Positions 2,371 to 42,456 are shown, counted from the stretch's first letter. The stretch is DNA of 64,000 nucleotides from Rebecca billardiae RCC1528 (GCA_965240325.2 OZ251232.1:744001-808000); one strand, 5' to 3'. Notes: generated by a model not told the origin, from the sequence alone. Numbers and translations: made by a program.

Positions 2371-2394
2371 ACGACGTGGCAGCATCGGACAAGC

Positions 2395-2441: not shown

Positions 2442-2444
<3 letters not shown>

Positions 2445-12490: not shown

Positions 12491-12544
12491 TACAGTTTAC
12501 TAAGAATAAGAGACGCACACAGCTTGCTCAGGCAGGCGAGATTG
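12491..12544 (+). mobile_element. Dispersed repeat family A copy ~150 bp upstream of the giant gene
   Basis: TACAGTTTACTAAGAATAAGAGACGCACACAGCTTGCTCAGGCAGGCGAGATTG. Confidence 0.65.
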
Positions 12545-12690
12545 TAATAACCCAAACTTCCGCGCGACGAATCGGCACGAGGACCAAGGACTGCCACCGG
12601 CGCGGGCGAACAGAACTTGAGCTGCCGCTGGTCAGCACTCGTGCGAAGTTCGTCGTCATCACTCCCCGCGGGTGCGCTGTTTGATCGCCC

Positions 12691-15600
12691 ATGATGACGT
12701 CGCCCCCCCGGCCAGGGCGATTCGGACGGATGAGGCGCAGGCGCGCACCACCTCCGCTGGCACTCACAGTGCTCGGTGCCGTGTGCTTCGGCCCGCAGCA
12801 TGCGCGGCCTGAGCCGTTCCCCCCGCCCAGCCCTCCTCCGTTGCCGCCGCCAAGCCCGCCGCCAAGCCCGCCGCCGCCGCCCTCGCCGCCGCCCTCGCCG
12901 CCGCCCTCGCCACCACCCAGCCCGCCACCCAGCCCGCCGCCCTCGCCGCCGCCCTCGCCGCCGCCCTCGCCGCCGCCCTCGCCGCCGCCCTCGCCGCCGC
13001 CCTCGCCGCCGCCCTCGCCGCCGCCCTCGCCGCCGCCCTCGCCACCTCCGCCCCCGTCGCCACCAAGTCCTCCACCGTCACCACCCAGCCCGCCATCGCC
13101 GCCGTCTCTTCCACCGTCCGCGCCCCCAAGCGCGCCGCCGCGGCCGCCGCCGAAGCCACCACCGAGCCCTCCGAGCCCGCCGCCGAAACCTCCGCCGCCC
13201 TCGCCCCCGCCTTTGCCACCGCCGTCTCCGCCGCCGCCCTCCCCGCCGCCATCGCCGCCGAGCCCTCCACCTCTGCCCCCACCAAGCCCGCCGCCGCCCG
13301 CGCCCCCGCCCTCGCCCCCGCCGCCCTCGCCGCCGCCCTCTCCACCGCCGCCCCCGCCACCGCCAAGTAAGCCGCCATCCCCGCCACCCTCTCCCCCCCC
13401 GCCGCCCTCGCCGCCACCAAGCCCACCTCCGCCGTCACCGCCGCCGAGCCCCCCGCCGAGCCCCCCACCGCCGTCGCCGCCGCCGCCGCCGCCGCCCTCG
13501 CCACCGCCGCCGCTCCCACCGCCGTCTCCACCGCCAAGCCCGCCACCACCGCTTCCCCCGCCATCTCCGCCGCCGCAGCCGCCGCCGCCATCGCCCCCGT
13601 CCCCGCCGCCCAGCCCGCCGCCACCGTTGCCTCCGCCATCCCCGCCTCCGCCGCTGCCGCCGCCCAGCCCACCGCCGCCTAAGCCGCCCCCGAGCCCGCC
13701 GCCCAGCCCACCGCCATCCCCGCCGCCCAGCCCACCGCCGTTCCCGCCCCCCCCGTCCCTGCCACCCAGCCCGCCGTCGCCGCCCCCACCGCCCAGCCCG
13801 CCGCCCCCGCCATCGCCACCGCCGCCGTCTGCGCCGCCGCCGCCGGCTCCGCCACCCAGGCCACCGCCAAGCCCGCCGCCACCGTCGCCGCCGCCGTCGC
13901 CGCCGCCGTCGCCGCCACCATCGCCGCCGCCGTCGCCCCCGCCGTCGCCGCCACCGCCCAGCCCGCCGCCCAGCCCGCCGCCCAGCCCGCCGCCGCCGCC
14001 ACCGCCGAGCCCCCCACCCAGCCCGCCGCCCAGCCCGCCGCCCAGCCCGCCGCCGAGCCCACCGCCGAGCCCGCCGCCGAGCCCGCCGCCGCCGAGCCCG
14101 CCGCCGAGCCCGCCGCCCAGCCCGCCGCCGCCGAGCCCCCCACCGAGCCCGCCGCCGAGCCCGCCGCCACCGATCCCACCTCCGAGCCCGCCGCCGCCGA
14201 GTCCGCCACCATCACCGCCGCCGAGCCCACCTCCGCCAAGCCCTCCACCAAGCCCTCCGCCCAGCCCTCCGCCGCCCTCGCCCCCGCCGAGCCCGCCCCC
14301 TCCGTCCCCGCCGCCCTTGCCTCCGAACCCGCCTGTCTCGCCGCCTTCCCCGCCGCCATCGCCCCCGCCGCCCTCCCCGCCGCCGAGCCCACCGCCGAGC
14401 CCTCCGCCGCCGAGCCCGCCGCCGAGCCCGCCGCCATCGCCGCCGCCATCGCCGCCGCCGTCACCCCCACCCAGCCCACCGCCGAGCCCGCCGCCGCCCT
14501 CGCCACCGCCATCACCGCCACCGTCGCCACCGCCGTCGCCGCCGCCCAGCCCGCCACCGAGCCCACCGCCTCCGCCGTCGCCGCCACCAAGCCCGCCGCC
14601 CAGCCCGCCGCCCTCGCCGCCGCCCTCGCCGCCACCGAGCCCACCGCCGTCGCCGCCGCCGAGCCCGCCACCAAGCCCGCCACCAAGCCCGCCGCCGAGC
14701 CCGCCGCCGAGCCCGCCACCGGGCCCACCGCCGAGCCCACCGCCGTCGCCTCCGCCCTCGCCACCGCCGAGCCCGCCGCCGAGCCCGCCACCGAGCCCGC
14801 CACCGAGCCCGCCGCCAAGCCCACCACCAAGCCCGCCGCCGCCCTCGCCACCGCCATCACCGCCCCCGTCGCCACCACCGTCGCCGCCGCCCAGCCCGCC
14901 ACCGAGCCCACCGCCTCCGCCGTCGCCGCCACCAAGCCCGCCGCCCAGCCCGCCGCCGTCACCGCCGCCATCGCCGCCGCCATCGCCACCGCCCAGCCCA
15001 CCACCGAGCCCACCGCCGCCCTCGCCACCGCCGCCAACTCCGCCGCCGAGCCCGCCGCCCTCGCCGCCACCGCCAAGCCCACCACCGAGCCCACCGCCGA
15101 GCCCACCGCCGAGCCCGCCGCCGTCACCACCGAGCCCTCCGCCCTCGCCGCCGCCGAGTCCACCGCCCGCGCCACCACCCAGCCCACCTCCTCCTAGCCC
15201 GCCGCCGAGCCCGCCACCCTCGCCGCCGCCGCCGAGCCCGCCGCCCTCGCCGCCACCCTCGCCGCCGCCCTCGCCGCCGCCGCCGAGCCCGCCGCCATCG
15301 CCGCCACCGCCAAGCCCACCGCCGAGCCCACCGCCGAGCCCACCGCCGAGCCCACCGCCGTCCCCGCCACCGAGCCCACCGCCTCCGCCGTCGCCGCCAC
15401 CAACCCCGCCGCCTAGCCCGCCGCCGTCACCGCCGCCATCGCCGCCGCCATCGCCCCCGCCCAGCCCACCCCCGAGCCCACCGCCGCCCTCGCCGCCGCC
15501 GCCAACTCCGCCGCCCAGCCCGCCGCCCTCGCCGCCACCGCCAAGCCCACCACCGAACCCACCGCCGAGCCCACCACCGAGCCCGCCGCCGGCACCACCG

Positions 15601-17541
15601 AGCCCACCGCCTTCGCCGCCGCCAAGCCCACCGCCTTCGCCGCCACCCAGCCCACCTCCTCCTAGCCCGCCGCCGAGCCCGCCACCCTCACCGCCGCCGC
15701 CGAGCCCGCCGCCCTCGCCGCCGCCCTCGCCGCCGCCCTCGCCGCCGCCACCGAGCCCGCCGCCCTCGCCGCCACCCAGCCCACCTCCCCCAAGCCCGCC
15801 GCCGAGCCCGCCACCCTCACCGCCGCCGCCGAGCCCGCCGCCCTCGCCGCCGCCCTCGCCGCCGCCCTCGCCGCCGCCACCGAGCCCGCCGCCCTCGCCA
15901 CCTCCGAGCCCGCCGCCGCCGCCTTTGCCGCCGCCGAGCCCTCCGCCAAGCCCGCCACCACCGCCATCGCCGCCGCCATCACCACCGCCGTCACCGCCGC
16001 CGTCACCGCCGCCTCCGAGCCCGCCGCCCTCGCCGCCCCCGAGCCCGCCGCCACCGCCCTCGCCGCCGCCCTCGCCGCCGCCAAGCCCTCCGCCGCCGCC
16101 GTCGCCGCCACCTTCGCCGCCGCCCTCACCGCCGCCCTCGCCACCGCCATCGCCGCCGCCCAGCCCGCCACCGAGCCCGCCGCCCTCGCCGCCGCCATCG
16201 CCACCGCCATCGCCACCGCCCAGCCCGCCACCCTCGCCACCGCCCTCACCGCCGCCACCCTCGCCGCCGCCCTCGCCACCGCCGAGCCCACCGCCACCGC
16301 CATCACCACCGCCGTCACCGCCGCCAACGCCGCCCTTGTCGCCTCCCTCGCCACCACCGAGCCCGCCACCGCCGCCATCGCCGCCGCCATCGCCGCCACC
16401 TTCGCCCCCGCCCTCGCCCCCGCCATCCCCGCCGCCGTCCCCGCCGCCTCCAAGCCCACCGCCTTCGCCACCGCCGAGTCCGCCGCCCTCGCCACCTCCC
16501 AGCCCGCCGCCACCCAGCCCGCCACCCAGCCCGCCACCGTCCCCGCCACCGCCCAGTCCGCCTCCAAGCCCCCCGCCATCCCCGCCACCTTCGCCCCCAC
16601 CGCCGAGCCCGCCACCGTCCCCACCGCCGAGCCCTCCACCGCCAAGCCCACCGCCCTCGCCACCGCCGAGCCCGCCGCCGCCGCCCTCTCCACCGCCGTC
16701 GCCGCCACCGAGCCCGCCACCGCCTCCATTGCCGCCGCCGAGCCCGCCGCCGAGCCCTCCGCCGCCGCCGTCACCACCACCATCGCCACCGCCGAGTCCG
16801 CCGCCGCCGCCCTCGCCTCCGCCCTCTCCGCCACCAAGCCCACCGCCGCTGCCCTTGCCGCCACCCAGCCCGCCACCGTCACCGCCGCCGTCGCCGCCAC
16901 CATCGCCGCCGCCATCGCCCCCACCGAGCCCGCCGCCGCCGTCACCTCCGCCCAGCCCGCCGCCGTCACCACCACCGTCACCGCCGCCGTCACCACCTCC
17001 GTCGCCGCCTCCAAGCCCGCCACCGCCGTCACCGCCGCCGTCACCGCCGCCATCGCCGCCGCCATCGCCGCCGCCAAGCCCACCACCATCGCCGCCACCG
17101 AGCCCGCCACCAAGCCCTCCGCCACCGCCGACGCCGCCGCCGTCGCCGCCGCCGTCGCCACCACCGAGCCCGCCGCCGCCGCCCTCGCCACCGCCCTCGC
17201 CTCCGCCGAGCCCGCCGCCGCCGCCCTCGCCACCGCCCAGCCCGCCACCGTCACCGCCCCCGTCGCCGCCACCATCACCACCGCCGTCGCCACCACCAAG
17301 CCCGCCGCCGCCGTCACCTCCGCCGAGCCCACCGCCGTCACCACCACCTTCACCGCCGCCGTCGCCGCCGCCATCGCCGCCGCCGAGCCCGCCACCGCCA
17401 CCGTCACCGCCGCCGTCACCGCCGCCATCGCCACCGCCATCGCCGCCACCGAGCCCGCCGCCGCCGTCACCTCCGCCCAGCCCGCCGCCGTCACCGCCAC
17501 CGTCACCGCCGCCGTCGCCACCGCCGTCGCCGCCTCCAAGC

Positions 17542-17583
<42 letters not shown>

Positions 17584-17868
17584 CCGCCATCGCCACCGCC
17601 AAGCCCACCACCATCGCCGCCACCGAGCCCGCCACCAAGCCCTCCGCCACCGCCGACGCCGCCGCCGTCGCCGCCGCCGTCGCCGCCACCGAGCCCGCCG
17701 CCGCCGCCATCGCCACCGCCGTCGCCTCCGCCGAGCCCGCCGCCGCCGCCCTCGCCACCGCCCAGCCCGCCACCGTCACCGCCCCCGTCGCCGCCGCCAT
17801 CACCTCCGCCAACACCACCACCGAGCCCGCCGCCGCCGTCACCTCCACCGAGCCCACCCCCGTCACCG

Positions 17869-17904
<36 letters not shown>

Positions 17905-18066
17905 CCGCCGAGCCCGCCACCGCCACCGTCACCGCCGCCGTCACCGCCGCCATCGCCACCGCCATCGCCGCCACCGAGCCCGCCGCCGCCGTCACCTCCG
18001 CCCAGCCCGCCGCCGTCACCGCCACCGTCACCGCCGCCGTCGCCACCGCCGTCGCCGCCTCCAAGC

Positions 18067-18108
<42 letters not shown>

Positions 18109-18447
18109 CCGCCATCGCCACCGCCAAGCCCACCACCATCGCCGCCACCGAGCCCGCCACCAAGCCCTCCGCCACCGCCGACGCCGCCGCCGTCGCCGCC
18201 GCCGTCGCCGCCACCGAGCCCGCCGCCGCCGCCATCGCCACCGCCGTCGCCTCCGCCGAGCCCGCCGCCGCCGCCCTCGCCACCGCCCAGCCCGCCACCG
18301 TCACCGCCCCCGTCGCCGCCGCCATCACCTCCGCCAACACCACCACCGAGCCCGCCGCCGCCGTCACCTCCACCGAGCCCACCCCCGTCACCGCCACCGT
18401 CACCGCCGCCGTCACCACCGCCGTCGCCACCGCCGAGCCCGCCACCG

Positions 18448-18482
<35 letters not shown>

Positions 18483-18819
18483 ACCGCCGTCGCCGCCACC
18501 GAGCCCGCCGCCGCCGTCACCTCCTCCGAGCCCACCACCGTCACCGCCACCGTCACCGCCGCCGTCACCGCCGCCGTCGCCACCGCCGAGCCCGCCGCCA
18601 CCATCGCCGCCGCCGTCGCCGCCGCCAACGCCGCCGCCGTCGCCGCCGCCCAGCCCACCACCATCGCCGCCACCGAGCCCGCCACCAAGCCCTCCGCCAC
18701 CGCCGACGCCTCCGCCATCGCCACCGCCGTCGCCGCCACCGAGCCCGCCGCCGCCGCCAGCGCCACCGCCGTCGCCTCCGCCGAGCCCGCCGCCGCTACC
18801 CTCGCCACCGCCCAGCCCG

Positions 18820-18850
<31 letters not shown>

Positions 18851-18915
18851 GGCCACCGCCGTCGCCGCCACCGAGCCCGCCGCCGCCGTCACCTCCTCCG
18901 AGCCTACCGCCGTCA

Positions 18916-18947
<32 letters not shown>

Positions 18948-21900
18948 CTCGCCACCGCCGAGCCCGCCACCGCCACCGTCACCGCCGCCGTCACCGCCGC
19001 CATCGCCACCGCCGTCGCCGCCGCCCAGCCCGCCACCGTCGCCGCCGCCGCCGTCGCCGCCGCCGTCACCGCCGCCGTCACCTCCGCCAACGCTGCCACC
19101 GTCGCCGCCACCCAGCCCGCCACCATCGCCGCCACCAAGCCCGCCACCGGCTCCCTTGCCCCCGCCCTCACCGCCGCCGACAGTGTCGTTGTCGCCCTCG
19201 CCGCCACCAAGCCCACCGCCGCCGCCGTCGCCCCCGCCGTCGCCACCACCGAGCCCGCCGCCGCCGTCTCCTCCACCCAGCCCACCGCCGTCACCGCCAC
19301 CGTCACCGCCGCCGTCGCCACCGCCAACGCCACCACCAAGCCCGCCACCGCCGTTGCCTCCGCCGTCACCGCCGCCAACGCCGCCACCGTCGCCGCCGCC
19401 CAGCCCACCACCGTCGCCGCCGCCGCCGTCACCGCCGCCGTCGCCCCCGCCGTCGCCACCACCGAGCCCGCCGCCGCCGTCACCTCCGCCCAGCCCGCCG
19501 CCGTCGCCACCGCCGTCACCGCCGCCGTCACCACCGCCAACGCCACCACCAAGCCCGCCGCCCCCGTCACCTCCGCCGTCACCACCGCCAACGCCGCCAC
19601 CGTCGCCACCGCCGAGCCCGCCACCATCGCCGCCACCGCCGTCGCCGCCGCCGTCGCCACCGCCGTCGCCACCACCGAGTCCGCCTCCGCCGTCTCCTCC
19701 ACCCAGCCCACCGCCGTCACCGCCACCGTCACCGCCGCCGTCACCACCGCCAACGCCACCACCAAGCCCGCCGCCGCCGTCGCCGCCGCCCAGCCCACCA
19801 CCATCGCCGCCACCAAGTCCTCCGCCATCGCCATCGCCTCCGCCGTCGCCACCGCCAACGCCACCACCGAGCCCGCCACCGCCGTCGCCACCACCGTCAC
19901 CTCCGCCGACGCTGCCGCCGTTTCCGCCGCCAAGCCCGCCACCATCGCCGCCACCGAGCCCGCCACCGGCTCCCTTGCCCCCGCCCTCACCACCACCGGC
20001 AACGTCTTTGTCGCCCTCGCCGCCACCAAGCCCACCGCCGCCGCCGTCGCCCCCGCCATCGCCACCACCGAGCCCGCCACCGCCGTCTCCTCCACCCAGC
20101 CCACCGCCGTCACCGCCACCGTCACCGCCGCCGTCGCCACCGCCAACGCCACCACCAAGCCCGCCGCCGCCGTCGCCTCCGCCGTCACCGCCGCCAACGC
20201 CGCCACCGTCGCCGCCGCCCAGCCCACCACCATCGCCGCCGCCGCCGTCGCCACCGCCGTCGCCCCCGCCGTCGCCACCACCGAGCCCGCCGCCGCCGTC
20301 ACCTCCGCCCAGCCCACCGCCGTCGCCGCCGCCGTCACCGCCGCCGTCACCACCGCCATCACCACCACCGAGCCCGCCGCCGCCATCACCGCCGCCGTCA
20401 CCGCCGCCTACGCCGCCACCGTCGCCGCCGCCCAGCCCACCACCATCGCCGCCGCCGCCGTCGCCGCCGCCGTCGCCACCGCCATCGCCACCACCGAGCC
20501 CGCCACCGCCGTCGCCTCCGCCCAGCCCACCGCCGTCGCCGCCGCCGTCACCGCCGCCGTCACCACCGCCCTCACCACCGCCGAGTCCGCCGCCACCGTC
20601 ACCGCCGCCGTCACCGCCGCCAACGCTGCCACCGTCGCCGCCGCCCAGCCCGCCACCGTTGCCACCACCGAGCCCACCACCACCGCCTTCGCCGCCGCCA
20701 TCGCCGCCGCCATCGCCGCCACCGTCGCCGCCACCCCTACCGCTTCCACCACCACGCACACTGCCGCTGCCACCACCATCACCGCCGAGCCCGCCGCCAC
20801 TGCCACCGCCGTCGCCGCCGCCGTCGCCGCCGCCATCACCACCACCGAGCCCTCCGCCGCCATCACCACCACCGTCGCCGCCCCCACCTGCGCCGCCACC
20901 TTCACCGCCGCCGAGCCCACCGCCGTCGGCACCGCCGAGCCCTCCACCAAGCCCTCCGCCACCGCCGTCGCCGCCACCGTCGCCTCCGCCGTCGCCACCG
21001 CCGTCGCCGCCGCCGCCGTCACCTCCGCCCAGCCCACCGCCGTCACAACCACCGTCACCGCCGCCGTCACCACCGCCATCACCACCACCGAGCCCGCCAC
21101 CGCCGTCACCGCCGCCGTCACCGCCGCCAACGCCGCCACCGTCGCCGCCGCCCAGCCCACCACCATCGCCGCCGCCGCCGTCGCCGCCGCCGTCGCCACC
21201 GCCGTCGCCACCACCGAGCCCGCCGCCGCCGTCACCTCCGCCCAGTCCGCCGCCGTCGCCACCGCCGGCACCGCCGCCGTCACCACCGCCAACACCACCA
21301 CCGAGCCCGCCGCCGCCGTCACCACCGCCGTCACCGCCGCCGACGCTGCCACCGTCGCCGCCGCCCAGCCCACCACCATCGCCGCCACCGAGCCCGCCAC
21401 CGGCTCCCTTGCCCCCGCCCTCACCACCACCGGCAACGTCTTTGTCGCCCTCGCCGCCACCAAGCCCACCGCCGCCGCCGTCGCCCCCGCCATCGCCACC
21501 ACCGAGCCCGCCACCGCCGTCGCCTCCACCCAGCCCACCGCCGTCACCGCCGCCGTCACCGCCGCCGTCACCACCGCCTACGCCACCACCGAGCCCACCG
21601 CCGCCGTTACCGCCGCCGTCACCGCCGCCAACGCCGCCACCGTCGCCGCCGCCCAGCCCGCCACCGTTGCCACCACCGAGCCCGCCACCGCCCTCACCTC
21701 CGCCCAGCCCACCACCGTCGCCGCCACCACCGTCACCGCCGCCGTCACCACCGCCATCACCACCACCGAGCCCGCCGCCGCCGTCACCACCGCCCTCACC
21801 ACCGCCGAGCCCGTCGCCGCCGTCACCGCCGCCGTCACCTCCGCCAACGACGCCACCGTCGCCGCCACCAAGCCCACCACCATCGCCGCCACCGAGCCCG

Positions 21901-29906: not shown

Positions 29907-29942
<36 letters not shown>

Positions 29943-30082
29943 ACCACCGCCCTCGCCGCCGTCGCCACCGTCGCCGCCCACACCGCCGTCACCACCGCCC
30001 TCGCCGCCCTCACCACCGCCCTCGCCGCCCGTGCCGCCCTCGCCGCCCTCGCCGCCGTCACCACCGCCCTCGCCGCCGTCAC

Positions 30083-30113
<31 letters not shown>

Positions 30114-30259
30114 ACCGTCACCACCGCCCTTGCCGCCCTCGCCACCCTCGCCACCGTCGCCGCCGTCACCACCGCCATCGCCGCCATCACCACCGCCCTC
30201 GCCGCCCGTGCCACCCTCGCCGCCCTCGCCGCCATCAGCACCGCCCTCGCCGCCGTCGC

Positions 30260-30290
<31 letters not shown>

Positions 30291-30466
30291 ACCGTCGCCG
30301 CCCTCACCGCCGCCCTCGCCGCCCTCCTCACCGCCCTCGCCGCCTGTGCCGCCCTCGCCGCCCTCACCGCCGTCACCACCGCCCTCGCCGCCGTCACCAC
30401 CGCCGTCGCCGCCCGTGCCGCCCTCGCCGCCCTCGCCGCCCTCAGCACCGCCCTCGCCGCCCTCAC

Positions 30467-30515
<49 letters not shown>

Positions 30516-33349
30516 ACCGCCTTCGCCGCCCTCACCACCGCCCGTGCCGCCGTCGCCGCCCTCGCCGCCGGCACCGCCGGCACCGCCGCCCTCGCCGCCC
30601 TCACCACCGCCCTCGCCGCCGGTGCCGCCCTCGCCGCCCTCGCCACCGTCACCGCCGCCCTCGCCGCCGTCACCACCGCCGTCGCCGCCCGTGCCGCCCT
30701 CGCCACCGTCGCCGCCGTCACCACCGCCCTCGCCGCCGTCACCACCGCCCTTGCCGCCCTTGCCGCCCTCGCCGCCCTCACCGCCGTCATCACCGCCCTC
30801 GCCGCCCTCGCCACCGCCCTCGCCGCCCGTGCCGCCGTCGCCGCCATCGCCGCCGTCACCACCGCCGTCGCCGCCCTCACCACCGCCGTCGCCGCCCGTG
30901 CCGCCCGCGCCACCGTCGCCGCCGTCACCACCGCCCTCGCCGCCGTCACCACCGCCCTTGCCGCCCGCACCGCCCTCGCCGCCCTCACCGCCGTCATCAC
31001 CGCCCTCGCCGCCCTCGCCACCGCCCTCGCCACCTGTGCCGCCGTCGCCGCCGTCGCCGCCCTCACCGCCGCCCTCGCCGCCCTCACCACCGCCCTCACC
31101 GCCTGTGCCGCCCTCGCCGCCATTGCCGCCCTCGCCACCGCCCTCGCCGCCCTCACCACCGCCGTCGCCGCCATCGCCGCCATCGCCACCGCCCTCGCCA
31201 CCTGTGCCGCCGTCGCCACCGTCCCCGCCGTCATCACCGCCCTCGCCGCCGTCACCACCGCCCTTGCCGCCTGTGCCGCCCTCGCCGCCATCGCCGCCCT
31301 CGCCACCGCCCTCGCCGCCGTCACCACCGCCATCGCCGCCTGTGCCGCCGTCACCGCCGTCGCCGCCTTCACCGCCGCCCTCGCCGCCCTCACCACCGCC
31401 CTCGCCGCCTGTGCCGCCCTCGCCGCCATCGCCGCCCTCGCCACCGCCCTCGCCGCCGTCACCACCGCCATCGCCGCCTGTGCCGCCTTCGCCGCCGTCG
31501 CCGCCGTCACCGCCGCCGTCGCCGCCGTCACCGCCGCCCTTGCCGCCCGTGCCGCCGTCGCCGCCCTCACCGCCATCATCACCGCCCTCGCCGCCCTCAC
31601 CACCGCCCTTGCCGCCCGCACCGCCCTCGCCGCCCTCACCGCCGTCATCACCGCCCTCGCCGCCCTCACCACCGCCCTCGCCGCCCGTGCCGCCCTCGCC
31701 ACCGTCGCCGCCGTCACCACCGCCCTCGCCGCCGTCACCACCGCCCTTGCCGCCCGCACCGCCCTCGCCGCCCTCGCCGCCGTCATCACCGCCCTCGCCG
31801 CCCTCGCCACCGCCCTCGCCACCCGTGCCGCCGTCACCGCCGTCGCCGCCTTCACCGCCGCCCTCGCCGCCCTCACCACCGCCCTCGCCGCCTGTGCCGC
31901 CCTCGCCGCCATCGCCGCCCTCGCCACCGCCCTCGCCGCCGTCACCACCGCCATCGCCGCCTGTGCCGCCTTCGCCGCCGTCGCCGCCGTCACCGCCGCC
32001 GTCGCCGCCGTCACCGCCGCCCTTGCCGCCCGTGCCGCCGTCGCCGCCCTCACCGCCATCATCACCGCCCTCGCCGCCCTCACCACCGCCCTCGCCGCCC
32101 GTGCCGCCGTCGCCGCCGTCGCCGCCCTCGCCACCGCCCTCGCCGCCGTCACCACCGCCCTCGCCGCCCGTGCCGCCCTCGCCGCCGTCGCCGCCGTCAC
32201 CACCACCCTCGCCGCCCTCACCACCGCCCTCGCCACCCTCACCTCCGTCGCCGCCCTCGCCGCCGTTACCACCGCCCTCGCCGCCCTCACCACCGCCCTT
32301 GCCGCCCTCGCCGCCGTCGCCGCCCTCTCCGCCCTCGCCACCGCCCTCGCCGCCCTCGCCACCGCCCTCGCCGCCCGTGCCGCCCTCACCGCCATCGCCG
32401 CCGTCACCGCCGCCCTCGCCGCCGTCACCGCCGCCCTCGCCACCCGTGCCGCCCTCGCCGCCCTCGCCGCCCTCACCACCGCCCTCGCCGCCGTCACCGC
32501 CGCCCTTGCCGCCCGTGCCGCCGTCGCCGCCCTCACCGCCATCATCACCGCCCTCGCCGCCCTCACCACCGCCCTCGCCGCCCGTGCCGCCGTCGCCGCT
32601 GTCGCCGCCCTCGCCACCGCCCTCGCCGCCGTCACCACCGCCCTTGCCGCCAGTGCCGCCATTGCCGCCATCGCCACCGTCATCACCGCCCTCGCCGCCC
32701 TCGCCACCGCCCTCGCCACCTGTGCCGCCGTCGCCGCCGTCGCCGCCCTCACCGCCGCCCTCGCCGCCCTCACCACCGCCCTCACCGCCTGTGCCGCCAT
32801 CGCCGCCATCGCCGCCATCGCCACCGCCATCGCCGCCGTCACCACCGCCCTCGCCGCCCTCGCCGCCCGCGCCGCCCGCGCCGCCGTCACCACCGCCCTC
32901 GCCGCCGTCGCCACCGCCCTCACCGCCTGTGCCGCCTTCGCCGCCCTCGCCGCCATCGCCACCGCCCTCGCCGCCGTCACCACCCTTGCCGCCGTCGCCG
33001 CCCTCGCCGCCATCACCACCACCCTCACCGCCATCACCACCGCCATCGCCACCCGTGCCGCCCTCGCCGCCCTCGCCGCTCTCTCCGCCGCCATCGCCGC
33101 CATCGGCTCCGCCCTCGCCGCCCTTGCCGCCATCGCCGCCCTCACCGCCCTCACCACCGCCCTCGCCGCCCTCGCCGCCCGTGCCGCCCTTGCCGCCCTC
33201 GCCTCCGTCACCACCGCCCTCGCCGCCCTCTCCACCGCCCTCGCCGCCCGTGCCGCCCTCGCCGCCCTCGCCGCCGTCACCACCGCCCTCGCCGCCGTCA
33301 CCACCGCCCTCGCCGCCCTTGCCGCCCTCGCCGCCCTCGCCGCCGTCAC

Positions 33350-33402
<53 letters not shown>

Positions 33403-33565
33403 GCGCCACCGCCGTCACCGCCCTCACCACCACCCTCGCCGCCCGTGCCGCCCTCGCCGCCCGTGCCGCCGTCACCGCCGCCCTCGCCGCCCTCACCACC
33501 GCCCTCGCCGCCCGTGCCGCCCTCGCCACCCTCACCGCCATCATCACCGCCCTCGCCACCCTCAC

Positions 33566-33611
<46 letters not shown>

Positions 33612-33705
33612 ACCGCCGCCCTCGCCACCCTCACCGCCGCCCTCGCCGCCCTCGCCCCCGTCGCCGCCGTCGCCTCCCTCACCGCCGCCCTCGCCACCCT
33701 CGCCA

Positions 33706-33738
<33 letters not shown>

Positions 33739-34462
33739 GTGCCGCCGTCACCTCCGCCCTCGCCGCCCTCATCACCGCCCTCGCCGCCTGTGCCACCGTC
33801 GCCTCCCTCGCCGCCTTCACCGCCGCCCTCGCCGCCCTCACCACCGCCCTCGCCGCCCGTGCCGCCCTCGCCGCCCTCTCCGCCGTCACCGCCGCCCTCG
33901 CCACCCTCACCACCGCCCTCGCCGCCCTCGCCGCCGTCGCCGCCCGTGCCGCCGTCACCACCGCCCTCGCCGCCGTCACCACCGCCCTCGCCGCCCGTGC
34001 CGCCGTCGCCACCCTCGCCGCCGTCGCCACCGCCCTCGCCGCCCTCACCACCGCCCTCGCCGCCAGTGCCACCGTCGCCGCCCTCGCCGCCGTCACCGCC
34101 GCCCTCGCCGCCCTCACCACCGCCCTCGCCGCCCGTGCCGCCGTCGCCGCCCTCGCCGCCATCGCCACCGCCCTCGCCGCCCTCACCACCGCCCTCGCCG
34201 CCATCGCCGCCCTCGCCGCCATCGCCGCCGTCATCACCGCCGTCGCCGCCCTCGCCACCGCCCTCGCCGCCAGTGCCACCGTCGCCGCCCTCGCCGCCGT
34301 CGTCACCGCCCTCGCCGCCCTCATCCCCGCCCTCGCCGCCCGTGCCACCGTCGCCTCCCTCGCCGCCTTCACCGCCGCCCTCGCCGCCCTCACCACCGCC
34401 CTCGCCGCCCGTGCCGCCCTCGCCGCCCTCACCGCCATCATCACCGCCGTCGCCACCCTCAC

Positions 34463-34497
<35 letters not shown>

Positions 34498-34993
34498 GTG
34501 CCGCCGTCACCTCCGCCCTCGCCGCCCTCATCACCGCCCTCGCCGCCCGTGCCACCGTCGCCTCCCTCGCCGCCTTCACCGCCGCCCTCGCCGCCCTCAC
34601 CACCGCCCTCGCCGCCCGTGCCGCCGTCGCCGCCCTCGCCGCCGTCATCACCGCCCTCGCCGCCCGTGCCACCGTCGCCTCCCTCGCCGCCTTCACCGCC
34701 GCCCTCGCCGCTCTCACCACCGCCCTCGCCGCCCGTGCCGCCCTCGCCGCCCTCACCGCCATCATCACCGCCGTCGCCACCCTCACCACCGCCCTCGCCG
34801 CCCTCGCCGCCCGCGCCGCCCGTGCCGCCGTCACCTCCGCCCTCGCCGCCCTCATCACCGCCCTCGCCGCCCGTGCCACCGTCGCCTCCCTCGCCGCCTT
34901 CACCGCCGCCCTCGCCGCTCTCACCACCGCCCTCGCCGCCCGTGCCGCCCTCGCCGCCCTCACCGCCATCATCACCGCCGTCGCCACCCTCAC

Positions 34994-35028
<35 letters not shown>

Positions 35029-35838
35029 GTGCCGCCGTCACCTCCGCCCTCGCCGCCCTCATCACCGCCCTCGCCGCCCGTGCCACCGTCGCCACCCTCG
35101 CCGCCGTCACCGCCGCCCTCGCCGCCCTCACCACCGCCCTCGCCGCCCGTGCCGCCGTCGCCACCCTCGCCGCCGTCGCCACCGCCCTCGCCGCCCTCAC
35201 CACCGCCCTCGCCGCCATCGCCGCCATCGCCGCCATCGCCGCCGTCATCACCGCCGTCGCCGCCCTCGCCACCGCCCTCGCCGCCAGTGCCACCGTCGCC
35301 GCCCTCGCCGCCGTCGTCACCGCCCTCGCCGCCCTCACCACCGCCCTCGCCGCCCGTGCCGCCCTCGCCGCCCTCGCCGCCGTCACCGCCGCCCTCGCCG
35401 CCCTCACCACCGCCCTCGCCACCTGTGCCACCGTCGCCGCCGTCGCCGCCGTCACCGCCGCCCTCGCCGCCGTCACCACCGCCCTCGCCGCCTGTGCCGC
35501 CCTCGCCGCCCTCGCCGCCGTCACCACCGCCCTCGCCGCCGTCACCGCCGCCCTCGCCGCCAGTGCCGCCTTCGCCACCGTCGCCGCCATTACCGCCGCC
35601 CTCGCCGCCCTCGCCACCGTCCTCGCCGCCCGTGCCGCCTTCGCCGCCCGTGCCGCCCTCGCCGCCGCCCTCGCCGCCCTCGCCACCGCCCTCGCCGCCC
35701 GTGCCGCCTTCGCCGCCCGTGCCGCCGTCGCCGCCGCCCTCGCCGCCCTCACCACCGCCCTCGCCGCCCGTGCCGCCGTCGCCGCCGTCGCCGCCCTCAC
35801 CGCCGCCCTCGCCGCCCTCACCACCGCCCTCGCCGCCA

Positions 35839-35874
<36 letters not shown>

Positions 35875-36292
35875 CCCTCGCCGCCGTCACCACCGCCCTC
35901 GCCGCCATCGCCCCCATCGCCGCCGTCGCCGCCGTCACCACCGCCCTCGCCGCCCTCACCGCCGCCCTCGCCGCCCGTGCCGCCCTCGCCGCCCTCACCA
36001 CCGCCCTCGCCGCCGTTTCCGCCCTCGCCGCCCTCGCCGCCGTCGCCACCGCCCTCGCCGCCCTCACCACCGCCCTCGCCGCCGTTTCCGCCCTCGCCGC
36101 CGTCGCCGCCGTCACCGCCGCCCTCGCCGCCCTCGCCACCGCCCTCGCCGCCCGTGCCGCCCTCGCCGCCCTCGCCGCCGTCACCGCCGCCCTCGCCGCC
36201 CTCGCCACCGCCCTCGCCGCCCGTGCCGCCCTCGCCGCCCTCGCCGCCCTCGCCACCGCCCTCGCCGCCCTCACCACCGCCCTCGCCGTCCC

Positions 36293-36338
<46 letters not shown>

Positions 36339-39300
36339 ACCACCGCCCTTGCCGCCCTCGCCGCCCTCGCCGCCCCCACCACCACCCTCGCCTTCGCCGC
36401 CGCCCAACTTCGAGCTGTACGACTTTGCTGCCATCTATCTCAACACAACCGGCGGCGTGGATGTCGACATCGACGTCGTTCTCTCCTCAGTCACGGACAC
36501 GCTGGGTGTGGATCCGGAGCGTGTCACTGTGCACGCCGTGGACGAGGTGAGCGCCGACGAGACTCGCGTCATCATCCGCGTGCGCAACGACCCATCGCTT
36601 GGCGACTCGCCAGTGGACGTCGTGGCAGGCCTGTCTCCGAGGCCTGAGCCTACTCCGACACCGCTGGAGACTCTCGCCGACACCCTGGGACTGCCTGTGT
36701 TCGAGCTGCCCAGGGCGTTCGAGCCGCCGTTTCCCCCGCCGTCGCCGCCGTCTCCCGCGCCGCCCCCCTTCCCGCCACCCCAGCCCCCTCCTCCCCTGCC
36801 GCCCCCGTCGCCGCCATCGCCGCCCCCTCAATTCCACATCGAGGAGTACCTTGCGCTCACGCTCAACCTGAGCGCGCCCGAGCTCGACCAGCTGTCGGAC
36901 GGGCTGCTGGAGACGGTGGCCGCCGAGCTGGGCGTCAACGAGTCGCGGCTTTCGTACGAGCTGGTCGACGACGTGGGCGATGGTTCGATCAAGGTCGTGA
37001 TCAAGGTCACCACGGACCCCGAGGCTGGGGAGACACCTGCTGACCCCGTTGGCAGCCTCACGCCGAACAATGGGCCGGGCACGCCCACGTCGCTCGACGA
37101 GCTGTCTGAATGGCTGGGCGTGCCCGTGGTGGCGTCACCGCACAACCACATGCCGCCGTCACCACCGCCTGTCCCGCCATCTCCCCCGCCGCCCCCGTCG
37201 CCGCCCTCGCCGCCGCCCGACCTCACCCGGGAGGACTACGTCGAGCTGAAGCTCAACCTGACCGGCCTGGACGTGGACGTCGTCCTCGAGCAGCTGCTCG
37301 AGACGATCGCTGGAGTGGCAGGGATCGACGTCGGCCGGCTGTCGATCGAGGACGTGATCCCGCTGCCGAACGGCGGCTCGAACGTCATCATCAAGGCGAC
37401 GGCCAACCCGGACGCGGGCGAGACGCTCACTGACCTCTCTCAGCTGCTCAAGCCTCCGGCGCCGGTGCCTCCCGAGCCGGCGCCGCTCGACGCGCTGAGC
37501 GAGGCCCTCGGCTTCACGCTGGTGACCACTCGCAAGCATGTACCTCCGTCACCGCCACCGGCGCCGCCTTCGCCGCCGGCGCCGCCATCGCCGCCGCCGA
37601 GGCTGGGGGAGGAGGAGTACTTGGCGCTGTACCTCAACCTGAGCGCCCTCGAGTTTGTGAGCTCGCCCAACATCACGCTGCTCGACGCGCTGGCCAACGA
37701 GCTGGGCATCGACGAGACTCGGCTGACGTTCGAGGTTGTGGCCGACCAGGGCGACGGCACGACCAAGGTGGTGATCAAGGTCACCACGGACCCCGAGGCT
37801 GGGGAGACACCTGCTGACCCCGTTGGCAGCCTCACGCCGAACAACGGGCCGGGCACGCCCACGTCGCTCGACGAGCTGTCTGAGACGCTGGGCGTGCCGT
37901 TGGCGGCGACACCGCACAACCACGTGCCGCCGTCGCCACCGCCATCGCCGCCGTCATCGCCGCCATCGCCGCCCTCGCCGCCATCGCCGCCTGCCCCGCC
38001 TGCCCCGCCGCCCGACCTGAGCGTCGAGGAGTACGTGGCGCTCACGCTCAACCTGACCGCTGCGCAGCTGGACGAGGCCGCGTTGGACGATCTGCGCGAT
38101 GCCGTCGCCGCCGAGCTGGACGTGGACCCCTCGCGCGTGTCGATCGAGACGGTCGACGAGCAGGGCGACGGCACGACGACGGTCGTGATCAAGGTCACCA
38201 CGGACCCCGAGGCTGGGGAGACACCTGCTGACCCCGTTGGCAGCCTTACGCCGAACAATGGGCCGGGCACGCCCACGTCGCTCGACGAGCTGTCGGAGAC
38301 GCTGGGCGTGCCGGTGGTGTCGACGCCGTACAACCACGTGCCGCCGTCGCCACCGCCATCGCCGCCATCGCCGCCATCGCCGCCATCGCCGCCTTCTCCG
38401 CCGCCCGACTTCAGCACCCAGGAGTACGTGGCGCTCACGCTCAACCTGACCGCTGCGCAGCTGGACGAGGCCGCGTTGGACGATCTGCGCGATGCCGTCG
38501 CCGCCGAGCTGGGCTTGAACACGTCGCGCGTGTCGATCGAGACGGTCGACGAGCAGGGCGACGGCACAACGACGGTCGTGATCAAGGTCACCACTGACCC
38601 CGAGGCTGGGGAGACACCTGCTGACCCCGTTGGCAGCCTCACGCCGAACAATGGGCCGGGCACGCCCACGTCGCTCGACGAGCTGTCGGAGACGCTGGGC
38701 GTGCCGGTGGTGTCGACGCCGTACAACCACGTGCCGCCATCATCTCCACCCGCGCCGCCCTCGCCGCCCGCGCCGCCGCCCTCGCCCGCGCCGCCGCCCA
38801 ACCGGGAGCTCTTCGACTTCATCGCCGTGTACGTCAACTCGACCGAGGCCGCGTTCAGCGAGCTGTCGATCGACTTCATCGCCCACCTGGCGGAGACGCT
38901 CGGGATCGACCCAGACAGACTTGCTGTGCACGTGGTCACCGAGCTGAGCGACACGGTGACACGCGTCGTCATCCGCGTGCGCACCGACCCCACGGCCGGT
39001 GACCCGCCAGTGGACACGGTTGGGACGCTGCTGCAGGGTGCCGGCGCAGGTGGCCCTTCCGCGCTGGAGCAGCTGAGCGCTCGGCTCGGTCTGCCGGTGC
39101 TGGAGGTGCCGACAGCCTTCGAGCCGCCCTCGCCGCCGCCCTCGCCGCCCTCGCCGCCGTCGCCGCCGCCCAACCTGCGCGAGGAGGAGTACGTTGCGCT
39201 CTCGATCAACCTCACGCGCGCAGAGTTTGGCGGGCTGCTCACCGAGGTGATGCTGGAGAACATGGCGGAGCGGCTGGAGATCGACCGCGAGCGCGAGTCG

Positions 39301-39499
39301 ATCGAGGTCGTCTTCGAGGACGTCGGCGGCACCATCGTCGCGGTCGTCAAGATCCGCGTGCGCGTGGGCGAGGACTTTGCGGACCCGGTCGGGCGGCTCA
39401 CGCCGCTCAACGGGCCGGACGCACCGCGCTCGCTCGAGGAGCTCTCCGAGTGGCTGGGCGTGCCCGTGCTCGCCATCTACTCGCACGTGCCGCCGTCGC

Positions 39500-39536
<37 letters not shown>

Positions 39537-41820
39537 CCCGCCGCCCTCGCCGCCCTCGCCCCCGCCCCGTCTGGTGGCTGAGGACTATCTCGCGCTCACT
39601 CTCGCCCTCAGCCCGGAGCAGTTCGAGGCCGCGCAGGAGGAGCTGCTCGGCAGGCTCGCGGGGCAGTTTGGCATCGACCCGTCGCGCCTGTCGATCGAGT
39701 CGACGGCGCCGCGGGCCGACGGCACCGTCAACGTGGTCATCAAGCTCTCCACCAACCTCTTCGCCGGCGAGACGCGCTTCGAGCTGAGCGCGCGGCTGCT
39801 CGCGCTCACGCGCTCGGGCGGGGGCGGCGCTGGCTGCGCCAACGTCACCAGCGGCACAGACGCCCTGCCCGCCGGCACTGGCGTGAACTGCACAAACAGC
39901 ACGCAGCTGCCGCTCACCGATGAGCTCAGCACGCTGCTGGGCGTGCCGGTCAGCGCGGAGCCGTACAGCCACGTGCCGCCCTCGCCGCCGCCCGCGCCGC
40001 CCTTCCCGCCGCCCAACCGCGTGGGCGAGGAGTACGTGGCGCTCGCACTCAACCTGCCGTGGTACGAGGCCGCCGAGGGCATGGGCGCGCTGCTCGCCTC
40101 GCTCGCGAGGTGCTTGGGAGCCTCAGAGAGCCGCTTCTCGCTCGAGATGCTGCAGGAGCTCAGCGCGGGGACGACCAAGGTGGTCGTCAAGCTGACGACA
40201 GACCTCAGCGGGGGCGAGGCGCCTGTGAGGCCTGCCGAGAGGCTCACACCGGACAACGGTCCGGGCACGCCGGCGTCGCTCGAGGACTTGTCTGCGTGCC
40301 TCGGCGTGCCCGTCACCGACGAGCCGTACAACCACTGGCCGCCCTCGCCGCCGCCTTCGCCGCCGCCGCCGCCGCTGGCGCCTGCCCAACCGCCGGCCGC
40401 GCCGCCCGCCCCGCCCCCGCCACAAGCAGACCCAGACCTGCTGGCGGCGCCCGGCGCCGGCACCTTGCCTGGGGGCTTGGGCCAGGGCAGCGAGGTGAGC
40501 ACGGAGGAGGACAGCGTGCTCACGTTCGGTGAGATCATCGAGCGGATCCGCGAGGCGCTGCGCGACCCCGACACGGGCACGGTGACCCTCGCCGGCATGC
40601 TGTCGGGCGTCACGTGCTGCCTCTGCTGCTGCTGGCTGTGGCTCTTTGCGCTCGTCGTGCGGCGCAGGCGCAGGAAGGAGCGCGAGCTGCTCAAGCTCGA
40701 ATCGATCGTCTCGCTCGGGCCGATCGGCGGCATGCGCGTGGACGTGCGCCCGAAGCTCGCATCCAGCGGGCTCGGCGCCCCCCCGATTGTCGCCGCCAAG
40801 CCGCTCAAGGTCCCGCGCCCGATCGTCGACTTCCCGTGGGCGTTCAGGCTCGGGCTGGGGAGGCGCCCGTCGACGGCCGGCGGCCCGTCCGACCTGCGCG
40901 ACGTCGGCCCGGAAGGGATGGAGGGCGGCGTCGCGGTTCAGATGGTCGACCCGCCCGTGCACCCGCTCGGCCAGCCGCGCCGTGGTTCGGCCTTTTTCCC
41001 GAGCACGCGGCTGGCTGGTGGGGCGGGCGTCAAGGAGCCCCTCGTCGGCACAAGCGTCACGGAGCCGCTCGTCGGCGCGGGCGCCGGCGCGGGCGCCGGC
41101 GCGGGCGCGGGCGCGGCACCGCCGGCCGGCCGGCGTGGGCCGCGCTTCCCCTGGAGCCGCGCGGAGCCGCCAGCCAAGCCCCAGCGCCGGCCGAGCTCCG
41201 GCCTCCGAGTGCTGCAACAGCCGGGCGGGGGCAGCACCATCGGGCGCATTGAGAAGCCACCAGCGCCGCCCATGCCCGCGCCGGGCGTGCAGGGCCAGAC
41301 CACGCCTCAGCCCAGGGATCCGTTCCATCGCCGACCACCCCCAGCTCCGCGTTCACCCCCGCCCAAGGCGAGCAAAAGCGCCGCCGCCGCCGCCGACAAG
41401 GGCCCGGCCGCGTTGCCCGCGACGGCCGCAGCCGCCGCCGCGGGCCCGACTGGCTTGCCCGCGACGGGCGGCGGCGGCCTTGCGGTGCCGCTCGCGGCCC
41501 TGCGCTCACCGAGGAGCGCGCGCGGCTCCGAAGCGTCCGTCAGCACGCCGTCGCGTGCCGGGGTCGGTGGCGGCGGCGTGCCGCCTGCAGCGGCCCGTTC
41601 GCCGCGATGGAGCGCGCGCAGATCAGACGCGTCCGCCAGCACGGTGCTGTCACTTTCGCCCGCGGCCGGTGGAGGTGACGCGGCCGCGGGCGGCACGGCG
41701 TCGCCTGCGAATGCGTCACTGCCAGTGCCACCAGCCCGCTCGCCGCGAAGGATGATGCGTCTGTCGCAGTCGAGCCTCGACAGCAGGTCGTCAGCATCGC
41801 CACGCGCGGGCCGACAGTAG
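12691..41820 (+). CDS. Giant (9709 aa) proline-rich extensin/mucin-like type-I membrane glycoprotein with 11 repeated globular modules
   Basis: Single ORF with no stops. Putative signal LALTVLGAVCFG (alternative ATG 12730). SPPP repeats ~12820-29388 and SPP/SPPV repeats ~29701-36405. Modules at ~29389, 36406, 36829, 37219, 37600, 38014, 38407, 38800, 39172, 39568, 40015. TM 40582-40659 followed by RRRRRKER and a Pro/Ser-rich tail. Third codon positions vary freely in the repeats. Confidence 0.9.
17131..18760 (+). repeat. Coding higher-order repeat, period 525 bp (175 aa)
   Basis: Marker PPPPPT (ACG) recurs at 17131, 17656, 18181 and 18706. Confidence 0.85.
20400..27200 (+). repeat. Coding higher-order repeats, periods 1224, 1224, 1050, 1050, 1050, 633 bp (boundaries approximate)
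   Basis: Marker LPLPPPRTLPL (CGCACA) at 20755, 21979, 23203, 24253, 25303, 26353 and 26986. Confidence 0.85.
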
Positions 41821-42112
41821 TAGCATCATCAGCAGCAGTCGTATAATCGATGATGGCTCTGGACTTCGGTTGACCCAGGCTGCCAGTGCCAGAGACGGGC
41901 GCGGCACTCAGTACGACTCACTGAACTGTGAGCTGGCAGCCTTCATCATCATGATATATGACGATGCGATGAAGTCACTAGCTACTCGTGAAAACTGCAC
42001 AGGAGGACCTCATCAATGGATGATGCAATAATGGATGCCTGCTAACTAGATGCTGATGAGTTAATCAGAGCGACGACGATATTGGGCCGCCGCCAACGAA
42101 CAAGCGCGCACT

Positions 42113-42132
42113 TCCTCTCTCTCTCTCTCTCT
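42113..42132. repeat. (CT)n microsatellite
   Basis: Direct observation. Confidence 0.9.
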
Positions 42133-42135
42133 ATA

Positions 42136-42456
42136 TAGTTCAGACTCTATTTTTACTATATGTATTTAACCATTTCAGACTCTGGTCAGAACACGGTCCG
42201 GGAGCGATCCGGATGCACCCGTAGCTATTGAAAATGTGTCACCGGACTGGGTAAGTAGCTATGAAAAATAGAGTGAAGTAGTCACAAACTGAATTTCACA
42301 CCCTGGGCACTTATTGGCCATCCATAGCAACCCTGCTTGGGGCCCTGTGGGAAACTTCGCCTTCGGGCGTTCATTCGGCCGCAGGAATGCGAAGATCATT
42401 TTCGGTACGCCCGGTTTCTATGACCGGACTGGCAGGGGTCAACCGGAGCCAGAGCC
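42136..42456 (+). mobile_element. Diverged relative of MITE family B (inner inverted repeat plus degenerate right TIR)
   Basis: GTTCAGACTCTATTTTTACTATATGT...GAAAAATAGAGTGAA (42138-42277) and TGACCGGACTGGCAGGGGTCAACCGGAGCCAGAGCC (42421-42456) resemble parts of 56524-57058. Confidence 0.6.

Follow-up and report, generated by a model that had tools for sequence, protein, structure and literature searches.

Organization of the locus

We analysed a 64,000-nucleotide (nt) stretch of the Rebecca billardiae RCC1528 genome (GCA_965240325.2 OZ251232.1:744001-808000), henceforth the window, and all coordinates given here are positions within it. Listing and translating its open reading frames (ORFs) revealed a single ORF on the + strand, at 12691-41820, that runs from ATG to stop over 9,709 codons and would encode a polypeptide with a predicted mass of 939 kDa. 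The start codon at 12691 is the first one downstream of an in-frame stop. From the N-terminus onward, the predicted protein consists of a signal-like peptide, a first Ser-Pro array (array A), a lone globular module, a second Ser-Pro array (array B), ten further copies of the module, one transmembrane (TM) segment, the basic motif RRRRRKE and a tail. A first-pass annotation of this DNA had described 29.1 kb without a stop codon and the same order of parts, and both are reproduced by the ORF and its translation. Its figures for the two arrays (~5500 and ~2200 residues), the ten modules, the tail (~385 residues) and the extended length (2.4 micrometres at 0.31 nm per residue) were all recovered when recomputed, and the type I layout that it drew, with a repeat arm, globular modules, one TM segment and a tail, is present. 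The parts of the locus are as follows, with the basis of each call in brackets.

12200-12690, + strand: non-coding stretch of low guanine-plus-cytosine (GC) content (47%), between the giant gene and a divergent hydrolase gene
12691-12804, + strand: start codon and signal-like peptide, residues 1-38 (hydropathy, charge)
12808-29388, + strand: array A, residues 40-5566, 5,527 residues (composition, units, phase)
29389-29706, + strand: module 1, residues 5567-5672, the lone copy between arrays A and B
29707-36405, + strand: array B, residues 5673-7905, 2,233 residues (SPP/SPPP/VPP units)
36406-40329, + strand: modules 2-11 with short Ser-Pro linkers, residues 7906-9213 (alignment, GC at third codon positions (GC3), structural model)
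40330-40587, + strand: juxtamembrane segment, residues 9214-9299 (translation, GC3)
40588-40659, + strand: single TM segment, residues 9300-9323 (hydropathy)
40660-41820, + strand: RRRRRKE and tail, residues 9324-9709, plus the stop codon (translation)

Together the two arrays hold 7,760 residues and, at 0.31 nm per residue, would measure 1.71 micrometres (array A) plus 0.69 micrometres (array B), or 2.41 micrometres in all. The ORF contains no head domain at the distal end, and there is no room for an upstream head exon because the nearest upstream gene lies on the opposite strand.

Both ends of the protein carry features expected of a membrane protein that spans the bilayer once. Residues 1-38 comprise a basic n-region (RMRRRR), a hydrophobic core (LALTVLGAVCF, the best 11-mer, with a Kyte-Doolittle value of 2.51) and then GPQHA, and we infer that this signal peptide is cleaved. 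The TM segment at residues 9300-9323 holds the sole 19-mer in the entire protein with a Kyte-Doolittle value above 2 (2.17) and is followed directly by RRRRRKE, a basic, positive-inside stop-transfer sequence. The N-terminal half of the TM segment contains five Cys residues (CCLCCC), presumably in the outer leaflet, which would be an unusual place for acylation sites. On its outer side, the juxtamembrane segment (residues 9214-9299; GC3 0.91) is Pro/Ala-rich at first and then acidic, with a short amphipathic stretch (GEIIERIREAL). The tail of 386 residues is of low complexity and has seven SP, three RxxS and seven PxxP motifs as well as two A-x-RSPR repeats; it is speculative that the SP, RxxS and PxxP motifs serve regulation or anchoring. 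The coding signature of frame 0 is strong to about residue 9450 (GC3 0.92) and weaker to about residue 9580.

Reading frame, repeat structure and surroundings of the arrays

The two arrays are built from short Ser-Pro units. Array A is 74% Pro and 20% Ser and contains 815 exact SPPP units, which cover 59% of its residues, along with 147 SPPPP and 63 SPPPPP units, plus LPPP and TPPP, while the units of array B are SPP (375), SPPP (153) and VPP (73). Runs of Pro are mostly of three residues in array A and of two in array B, with a maximum of eight. The arm as a whole has a Pro content of 67-74%, together with Ser and almost no Thr, and its 7,760 residues include no Tyr, no Cys and four Lys.

Since high-GC CCN repeats leave five of the six frames almost without stops, as is the case across both arrays (78-84% GC), the openness of the ORF is by itself weak evidence of coding here. 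Four independent signals nevertheless point to frame +0. First, the peptide that it encodes is the simplest: its amino-acid entropy (1.14 bits in array A, 1.20 bits in array B) is the lowest, with the other frames at 1.44-2.70 bits, and nucleotide entropy within the arrays reaches 1.5-1.6 bits at codon position 3 versus 0.27-0.56 bits at position 2. Second, Ser is spelled by both TCN and AGC codons, a swap that is silent on the + strand and that the opposite strand would read as Asp versus Leu, which supports coding on the + strand. Third, Pro-Ser-Pro DNA motifs, searched blind to frame, fall in phase 0 in 1,537 cases out of 1,537, and all 1,536 spacings between them are multiples of three. 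This phase is kept among units that have diverged, for 697 SPPP units carry 87 distinct DNA spellings and Tandem Repeats Finder reports inter-unit matches in the arrays of merely 61-81%; thus, 23.3 kb of heavily substituted sequence has retained no frame-breaking insertion or deletion. Fourth, one frame encodes the signal-like peptide, all 11 modules and the TM segment, the modules show the coding pattern GC3 > GC1 > GC2 (GC1/GC2/GC3 of 0.71/0.53/0.88), and the boundaries of the gene are sharp: GC content is 0.47 at 12200-12599 versus 0.69-0.86 from 12600 onward, and 0.47 again at 41900-42199, just past the stop codon. We conclude that frame +0 is under selection. A Gly-rich protein read from the reverse strand was considered and rejected, given its higher amino-acid entropy, its reading of AGC and TCN as Leu versus Asp, and modules and a TM segment that read on the + strand only.

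Superimposed on the short units are higher-order repeats, with units of 23, 46 and 69 residues in array B and periods of 71, 175, 350 and 408 residues in array A. The three longer periods of array A correspond to 525, 1,050 and 1,224 nt (175, 350 and 408 codons), all multiples of three, and chaining of k-mer diagonals placed them in two zones.

17071-18413, + strand: higher-order repeat zone with a 525-nt period, copies 98.4% identical
20737-27239, + strand: higher-order repeat zone with 1,224- and 1,050-nt periods, copies 97-99.3% identical

The second zone is subdivided, with the 1,224-nt period at 20737-23390 and the 1,050-nt period at about 22920-27239, and the longest exact repeat in array A is 1,274 nt. 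Such near-identical repeats indicate recent unequal exchange, as judged from the sequence, and both zones (20737-27239 and 17071-18413) are likely sites of length polymorphism. They are also the only part of the gene in which there is real doubt over assembly or over copy number in the strain; elsewhere the arrays have diverged, with unique sequences making up 80% of the 250-mers of array A and 99% of those of array B.

The gene has an ankyrin-repeat ORF and a hydrolase-like ORF upstream, both on the opposite strand.

6617-8332, - strand: ankyrin-repeat ORF, upstream neighbour
10431-11756, - strand: PAF-acetylhydrolase/alpha-beta-hydrolase-like ORF (Pfam PAF-AH_p_II/Abhydrolase_3)

About 930 nt, the 47%-GC stretch among them, lie between the hydrolase-like ORF and the giant gene, which point away from each other. 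Pfam gave no match for most neighbouring ORFs in the window. Further downstream, the region at 49692-55147 has 75-81% GC; either strand carries long ORFs there (up to 884 residues) without a Pfam match, and a further gene of the low-complexity or orphan kind may be present.

The tandem module, its predicted fold and its relatives

The module of ~105 residues occurs in 11 copies, and those numbered 2-11 are joined by Ser-Pro linkers of 16-38 residues each. Their starts and ends, all on the + strand, are approximate.

36406-36714, + strand: module 2
36829-37143, + strand: module 3
37219-37530, + strand: module 4
37600-37917, + strand: module 5
38014-38331, + strand: module 6
38407-38733, + strand: module 7
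38800-39114, + strand: module 8
39172-39483, + strand: module 9
39568-39966, + strand: module 10
40015-40329, + strand: module 11

In an alignment of the copies (A1), identity to the first ranges from 25% to 77%, and a near-invariant Asn stands in an N-x-T/S sequon across the modules. Modules 1 and 4 are 90% identical at the DNA level and differ at three positions in the first 72 residues. Module 1 appears to be a recent partial duplicate of module 4, in which the N-terminal two-thirds are near-identical and the C-terminal third has diverged. The linkers between the modules are built of SPP, SPPP and APP units, as in array B, and array B looks like such a linker grown from about 25 residues to 2,233, an expansion that seems to have followed the distal placement of a module 4 copy. 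Array A is a separate array of the SPPP type.

We modelled the module with AlphaFold. The 11 sequences gave a predicted local distance difference test score (pLDDT) of 74.5, whereas a 32-sequence alignment (A2) gave a pLDDT of 94.5 and a predicted template-modelling score (pTM) of 0.86, with elements in the order beta-alpha-beta-beta-alpha(-beta). In an exhaustive structure search with VIA, 15 of the top 19 rows were extracellular SEA, SEA-like or membrane-adjacent domains (MADs). These included CELSR1 (Z 9.4), PCDH15 MAD12 and CDH23 MAD28 (Z 8.3), the MUC16 SEA domain (Z 8.1, with 99 of 110 residues aligned, and Z 7.7), dystroglycan (Z 8.0), IA-2 (Z 7.5), TMPRSS6 (Z 6.8), Notch2 HD (Z 6.7) and Trop2 (Z 6.6). 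The module thus resembles, in its predicted model, a ferredoxin-like sandwich of the SEA/MAD type, a likeness at the level of fold that does not imply homology. The mucin layout proposed in the first-pass annotation is borne out to this extent, in that the predicted fold of the modules resembles that of SEA domains and MADs (Z 8.1-9.4). By sequence the modules do not match SEA: Pfam SEA (PF01390) had no match at E values up to 1 in the module region or up to 0.1 in each module taken singly. The KIAA0319 C-terminal domain (PF23620) gave a marginal match (28.7 bits versus a cut-off of 27), and neither this nor DUF4853 and the other marginal Pfam matches were accepted as membership. A profile search against the sequences of the PDB returned chance-level matches alone (PCNA, Nup54).

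SEA domains are known for self-cleavage at one hairpin, with G/SVVV as the autoproteolysis motif in the MUC1/MUC16 type, and a G-S or G-T pair lies at the predicted beta2-beta3 hairpin in nine of the 11 modules. Modules 1 and 4 alone have the hairpin motif G-S-x-V-I-I; in the other seven, two extra residues stand between G-[ST] and V-V-I, all of them at the predicted hairpin. The presence of G-[ST] at the position of SEA self-cleavage is no more than suggestive.

Relatives of the module are few. When 1.84 billion representative proteins were searched with HMMER, just seven reached an E value of 0.001 or better with the module profile. One of them (E 1.5e-48), protein P0001, is encoded on a metagenomic sequence, L001 (JGI metagenome sample 3300038657; 1-3183), whose GC content of 63% indicates that it belongs to another organism. 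Its SPPP array runs off the 5' end and is in frame with at least ten tandem modules that have no Pro linkers between them. L001 also has one frameshift inside its fourth module, at about nt 1198-1217, which is either a sequencing error or the mark of a decaying copy. Another (P0002, E 1.4e-12) comes from a fragment of a Pavlova gyrans transcript (MMETSP1466); among named organisms, this is the module's nearest relative, and the end of a module runs into PPFSPPP in it. A further one (P0003, E 7e-11), a JGI metagenome protein of 1,463 residues from a protist, combines Cys repeats of the Ephrin_rec_like kind with a mucin-like stretch of Thr and Pro, after which come four modules that adjoin the TM segment, and then a tail; here, the module family is seen as a membrane-adjacent unit in a mucin setting of the Thr type. 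Two metagenome scans, one with a module from the window and one with a module of L001, gave no matches. On the sequences compared, the module would be an extracellular unit that is rare among marine protists, belongs to no named family and tends to adjoin the membrane, and the plan of a rod followed by beads appears to be conserved beyond the R. billardiae genome.

Precedents and a predicted surface fibril

Several known systems resemble the giant protein in part. Plant extensins have Ser-Pro3-5 repeats in common with array A and carry Tyr cross-link motifs (YXY, VYK), whereas the giant protein lacks Tyr throughout its 7,760 array residues. Because the arrays hold no Tyr, and with it no such motifs, this is not a plant-type extensin, and the term extensin used in the first-pass annotation fails in the plant sense. 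The transmembrane mucins MUC16 and MUC1 show the same order of parts, namely an O-glycosylatable repeat arm, SEA-fold modules, a single TM segment and a tail in which there are candidate sites of phosphorylation; the giant protein differs from them in its Ser/Pro arm almost without Thr, in modules without a Pfam SEA match and in its algal host. The Ser/Pro arm points to glycosylation of the hydroxyproline (Hyp) type rather than of the N-acetylgalactosamine type, and the mucin-like plan in an alga is probably a case of convergence. In Chlamydomonas, GP1 and the sexual agglutinins SAG1 and SAD1 form surface fibrils from globular domains and polyproline-II shafts of the Ser-Pro3 type without Tyr cross-links. 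They are several times shorter than the giant protein (roughly 3,400-3,900 residues for the agglutinins), have a head-and-shaft design without an array of SEA-like beads and belong to a different lineage.

A closer precedent is MST3/Mstax (Cre06.g309951), the axial protein of Chlamydomonas reinhardtii mastigonemes, with a length of ~8,000-8,572 residues (PMC11015965; bioRxiv 10.1101/2024.12.24.630281). According to the same two reports, its Pro-rich N-terminus, right after the signal peptide, forms the thin distal filament, and the 429-residue Pro-rich tip measures 146 nm against a prediction of 133 nm. They further describe a Hyp-glycan stem spanning 660-800 nm, a PKD2-like anchor with a cytosolic region, mutants without mastigonemes and a role of the Pro repeats as a molecular ruler. 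Both proteins are giants whose Pro-rich chain follows the signal peptide and has a distal N-terminus, and both combine globular domains with a membrane anchor and a cytosolic region. An extended Hyp-glycan chain sets a length of sub-micrometre to micrometre scale in MST3, as it would in the giant protein. They differ in that MST3 has P13...P11(XXP)3 stem repeats sheathed by MST1, lectin domains and a PKD2-like multi-pass anchor in a green alga, whereas the giant protein has SPPP/SPP units with Pro runs of at most eight, SEA-like modules and a single TM segment. Consistent with this, Pfam revealed no channel domain in the giant protein and hydropathy only one hydrophobic segment, and no sequence homology between it and MST3/Mstax was found. 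MST3/Mstax is the closest mechanistic precedent and, along with TLP-4 and the MUC16-type mucins, one of the nearest systems described, and the novelty implied by the first-pass annotation is reduced in that a giant membrane-anchored Hyp-rich filament core had already been described.

The second structural precedent is TLP-4 (CryoSeek II), a free fresh-water glycofibril of unknown origin made of one chain of S/T-P-x-x tetrapeptides that bears 3,4-dihydroxyproline, rises 12.4 A per tetrapeptide and is kept extended by its glycans (PMC11725842). The longest TLP-4-like candidate found in databases has 667 repeats in 6,077 residues and comes from a diatom (PMC11725842). The giant protein shares the S/T-P-x-x chain, and the 815 exact SPPP units of array A exceed those 667 repeats; TLP-4 is a free fibril, whereas the giant protein is predicted to be anchored in the membrane. 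The length arithmetic of the first-pass annotation agrees with these measured glycosylated Pro-rich chains (12.4 A per tetrapeptide in TLP-4; 146 versus 133 nm for the MST3 tip). Among coccolithophores, the extensin-like proteins EhG42278.1 and CAE5912150.1 have Ser-Pro3-4 repeats and were detected by proteomics (PMC10290126, PMC11685980); compared by description only, they come from coccolith or coccolith-vesicle fractions, with no layout of rod, beads and TM segment reported. In the literature searched, no published protein with the layout of the giant protein was found. It has two rods parted by one module and a single-pass anchor, and it is complete from signal peptide to stop. In our view it belongs with the rod proteins of the hydroxyproline-rich glycoprotein (HRGP) type and with mucin-like membrane glycoproteins, a grouping with clear precedents since 2024.

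Based on this layout, we favour the following reading. The signal-like peptide, the two Ser-Pro arrays, the 11 modules, the TM segment with its stop-transfer sequence and the tail all belong to one continuous frame. The signal peptide would direct the protein to the endoplasmic reticulum, where prolyl 4-hydroxylases would turn Pro of the SPPP and SPP units into Hyp, and transferases of the Golgi would then put O-glycans on Hyp and Ser, as expected from HRGP biochemistry. A published study shows ExAD-like GT47 genes in other haptophytes. The glycan coat would keep the chain as a polyproline-II type rod of ~0.31 nm per residue, as in the structures of MST3 and TLP-4, while the ten modules with their conserved N-glycosylation sequon would, on the predicted fold, form a beaded stalk at the membrane. 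Because the distal end lacks a head domain, the working part would be the rod itself, together with the glycans that coat it. The product would be a single-molecule fibril of ~1.7 + 0.7 micrometres, serving as a fine hair or as an outer layer of the glycocalyx on the cell or flagellar membrane, in which module 1 and the stalk modules might, speculatively, act as force-sensitive or shedding points. The protein probably builds a surface hair coated with sugars. In pavlovophytes, the longer flagellum carries hairs that are fine and non-tubular, and these may be linked to the giant protein. Taken as a whole, with the role in a surface fibril included, we hold it to be moderately probable that 12691-41820 is a real protein-coding gene, for which introns need not be invoked, and that it encodes a type I membrane glycoprotein of this kind.

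A number of observations weigh against this reading. The gene and its layout were read from genomic DNA alone, and copy number and exact length are uncertain within the ~6.5 kb of near-identical repeat in array A. At the N-terminus, the signal peptide is called from hydropathy and charge, and its n-region is long; at the other end, the last ~130 residues of the tail (41431-41817) lack the GC3 > GC2 coding signature, with GC at ~77% up to the stop, so that the true C-terminus may differ from the end of the annotated ORF. As for the fold, the top single row of the VIA search is an intracellular domain, the ferredoxin-like domain of Nup54 (Z 9.6), Z scores of 8-9.6 lie within or just above the range that the tool calls common and amount to a middling fold match, and Foldseek found nothing in the PDB at E < 1e-3 for either module model. 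Word-index protein searches with the C-terminal 1,804 residues (7906-9709) and with the juxtamembrane-TM-tail region yielded no relatives, and the exact full-length sequence is absent from a collection of 15 billion proteins. The lone weak match of the word-index searches (E 1.7e-4, over 1% of the query) was discarded.

The rods might instead be a scaffold or ruler, that is, a template bound at regular intervals by glycoproteins, scales or knob-like bodies, in which the gene sets length and spacing. MST3/Mstax acts in this way for MST1, its Pro repeats being a molecular ruler, and both arrays of the giant protein show higher-order periodicity (23/46/69 residues in B; 71, 175, 350 and 408 residues in A). 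Yet the arrays have nothing like the P11-P13 runs of MST3, since their Pro runs are mostly of three residues and never exceed eight, and over most of array A the periodicity is weak, with matches of 61-67%. We regard such a role as unlikely. An equally doubtful proposal is that the protein is a flexible or shed mucin, either a brush or a precursor cut at the SEA-like modules or in the juxtamembrane region, which would release micrometre-long glycofibrils as mucilage or coat. The G-S/G-T pair at the beta2-beta3 hairpin in nine of 11 modules, the site of SEA self-cleavage, fits this proposal, as do the free TLP-4 fibrils that occur in natural water (PMC11725842), and in membrane proteins, SEA domains frequently cleave themselves and later come apart under force (PMC10556640). 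Against it, the modules have no sequence-level membership in the SEA family, and most of them carry two extra residues between G-[ST] and V-V-I.

Elements of shedding can also be joined to the surface hair that we favour. In this combination, which we advance tentatively and with low expectation, the hair would be one molecule with built-in break points, located in the ten-bead stalk and in the lone module that parts the two rods, which under load would cleave themselves or unfold. If true, the break points would let the cell sense a pulling force or release glycan-coated fibrils, 1.7 micrometres long and of the TLP-4 kind, and the gene would offer a genetic source both for the fine, non-tubular hairs that haptophytes bear and for the free glycofibrils of natural waters.

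A different gene model would deny the rods altogether: the arrays would be wholly or partly intronic, or a satellite between exons, or the locus a decaying pseudogene, leaving a product of ~2,000 residues or less. It could draw on the near absence of stops from five of six frames in the arrays, by which openness proves nothing, on the lack, in the public collections searched, of a gene model or transcript that covers the locus, and on the fact that the organism has introns, about 55% of the genes of Diacronema lutheri being multi-exon. The genome of D. lutheri has 73.25% GC, 45% single-exon genes and a PacBio read N50 of 23 kb at about 315x coverage (PMC8379373). The composition of the window fits that genome and, like the Pavlova gyrans match of the module, agrees with a very GC-rich alga that is probably a pavlovophyte haptophyte. 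However, the perfect phase and synonymous-type substitution across 23.3 kb, the one frame that the signal peptide shares with all 11 modules, the SPPP array in frame with its modules in the relative L001, and the Pro linker retained in the Pavlova gyrans transcript fragment all speak against it, and we judge it improbable. Least credible of all is that the assembly has over-expanded a much shorter genomic repeat, for although there are a 1,274-nt exact repeat and 525-, 1,050- and 1,224-nt units of 97-99.3% identity at 17.1-18.4 and 20.7-27.2 kb, the units outside those zones have diverged, 80% (A) and 99% (B) of 250-mers are unique and the sequence contains no Ns.

A type I glycoprotein that forms a surface fibril thus remains our preferred reading, and it would have several implications. 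At 9,709 residues, the protein would rank among the longest Hyp-type rod proteins known, longer than MST3, in a lineage, the haptophytes, where such proteins have barely been described. It would combine a mucin-like plan (arm, SEA-fold beads, TM segment and tail) with Ser-Pro chemistry of the plant and algal type. Searches of public protein collections found neither the giant protein nor a relative of its C-terminal part, a result suggesting that a class of giant surface genes is concealed by the masking of repeats. As a complete gene, from signal peptide to tail, it provides a concrete candidate for the make-up of fine algal hairs and of free environmental glycofibrils. The predicted protein is a candidate for a micrometre-scale surface hair built by one gene, and in it nature would provide a monodisperse glycopolymer of micrometre length.

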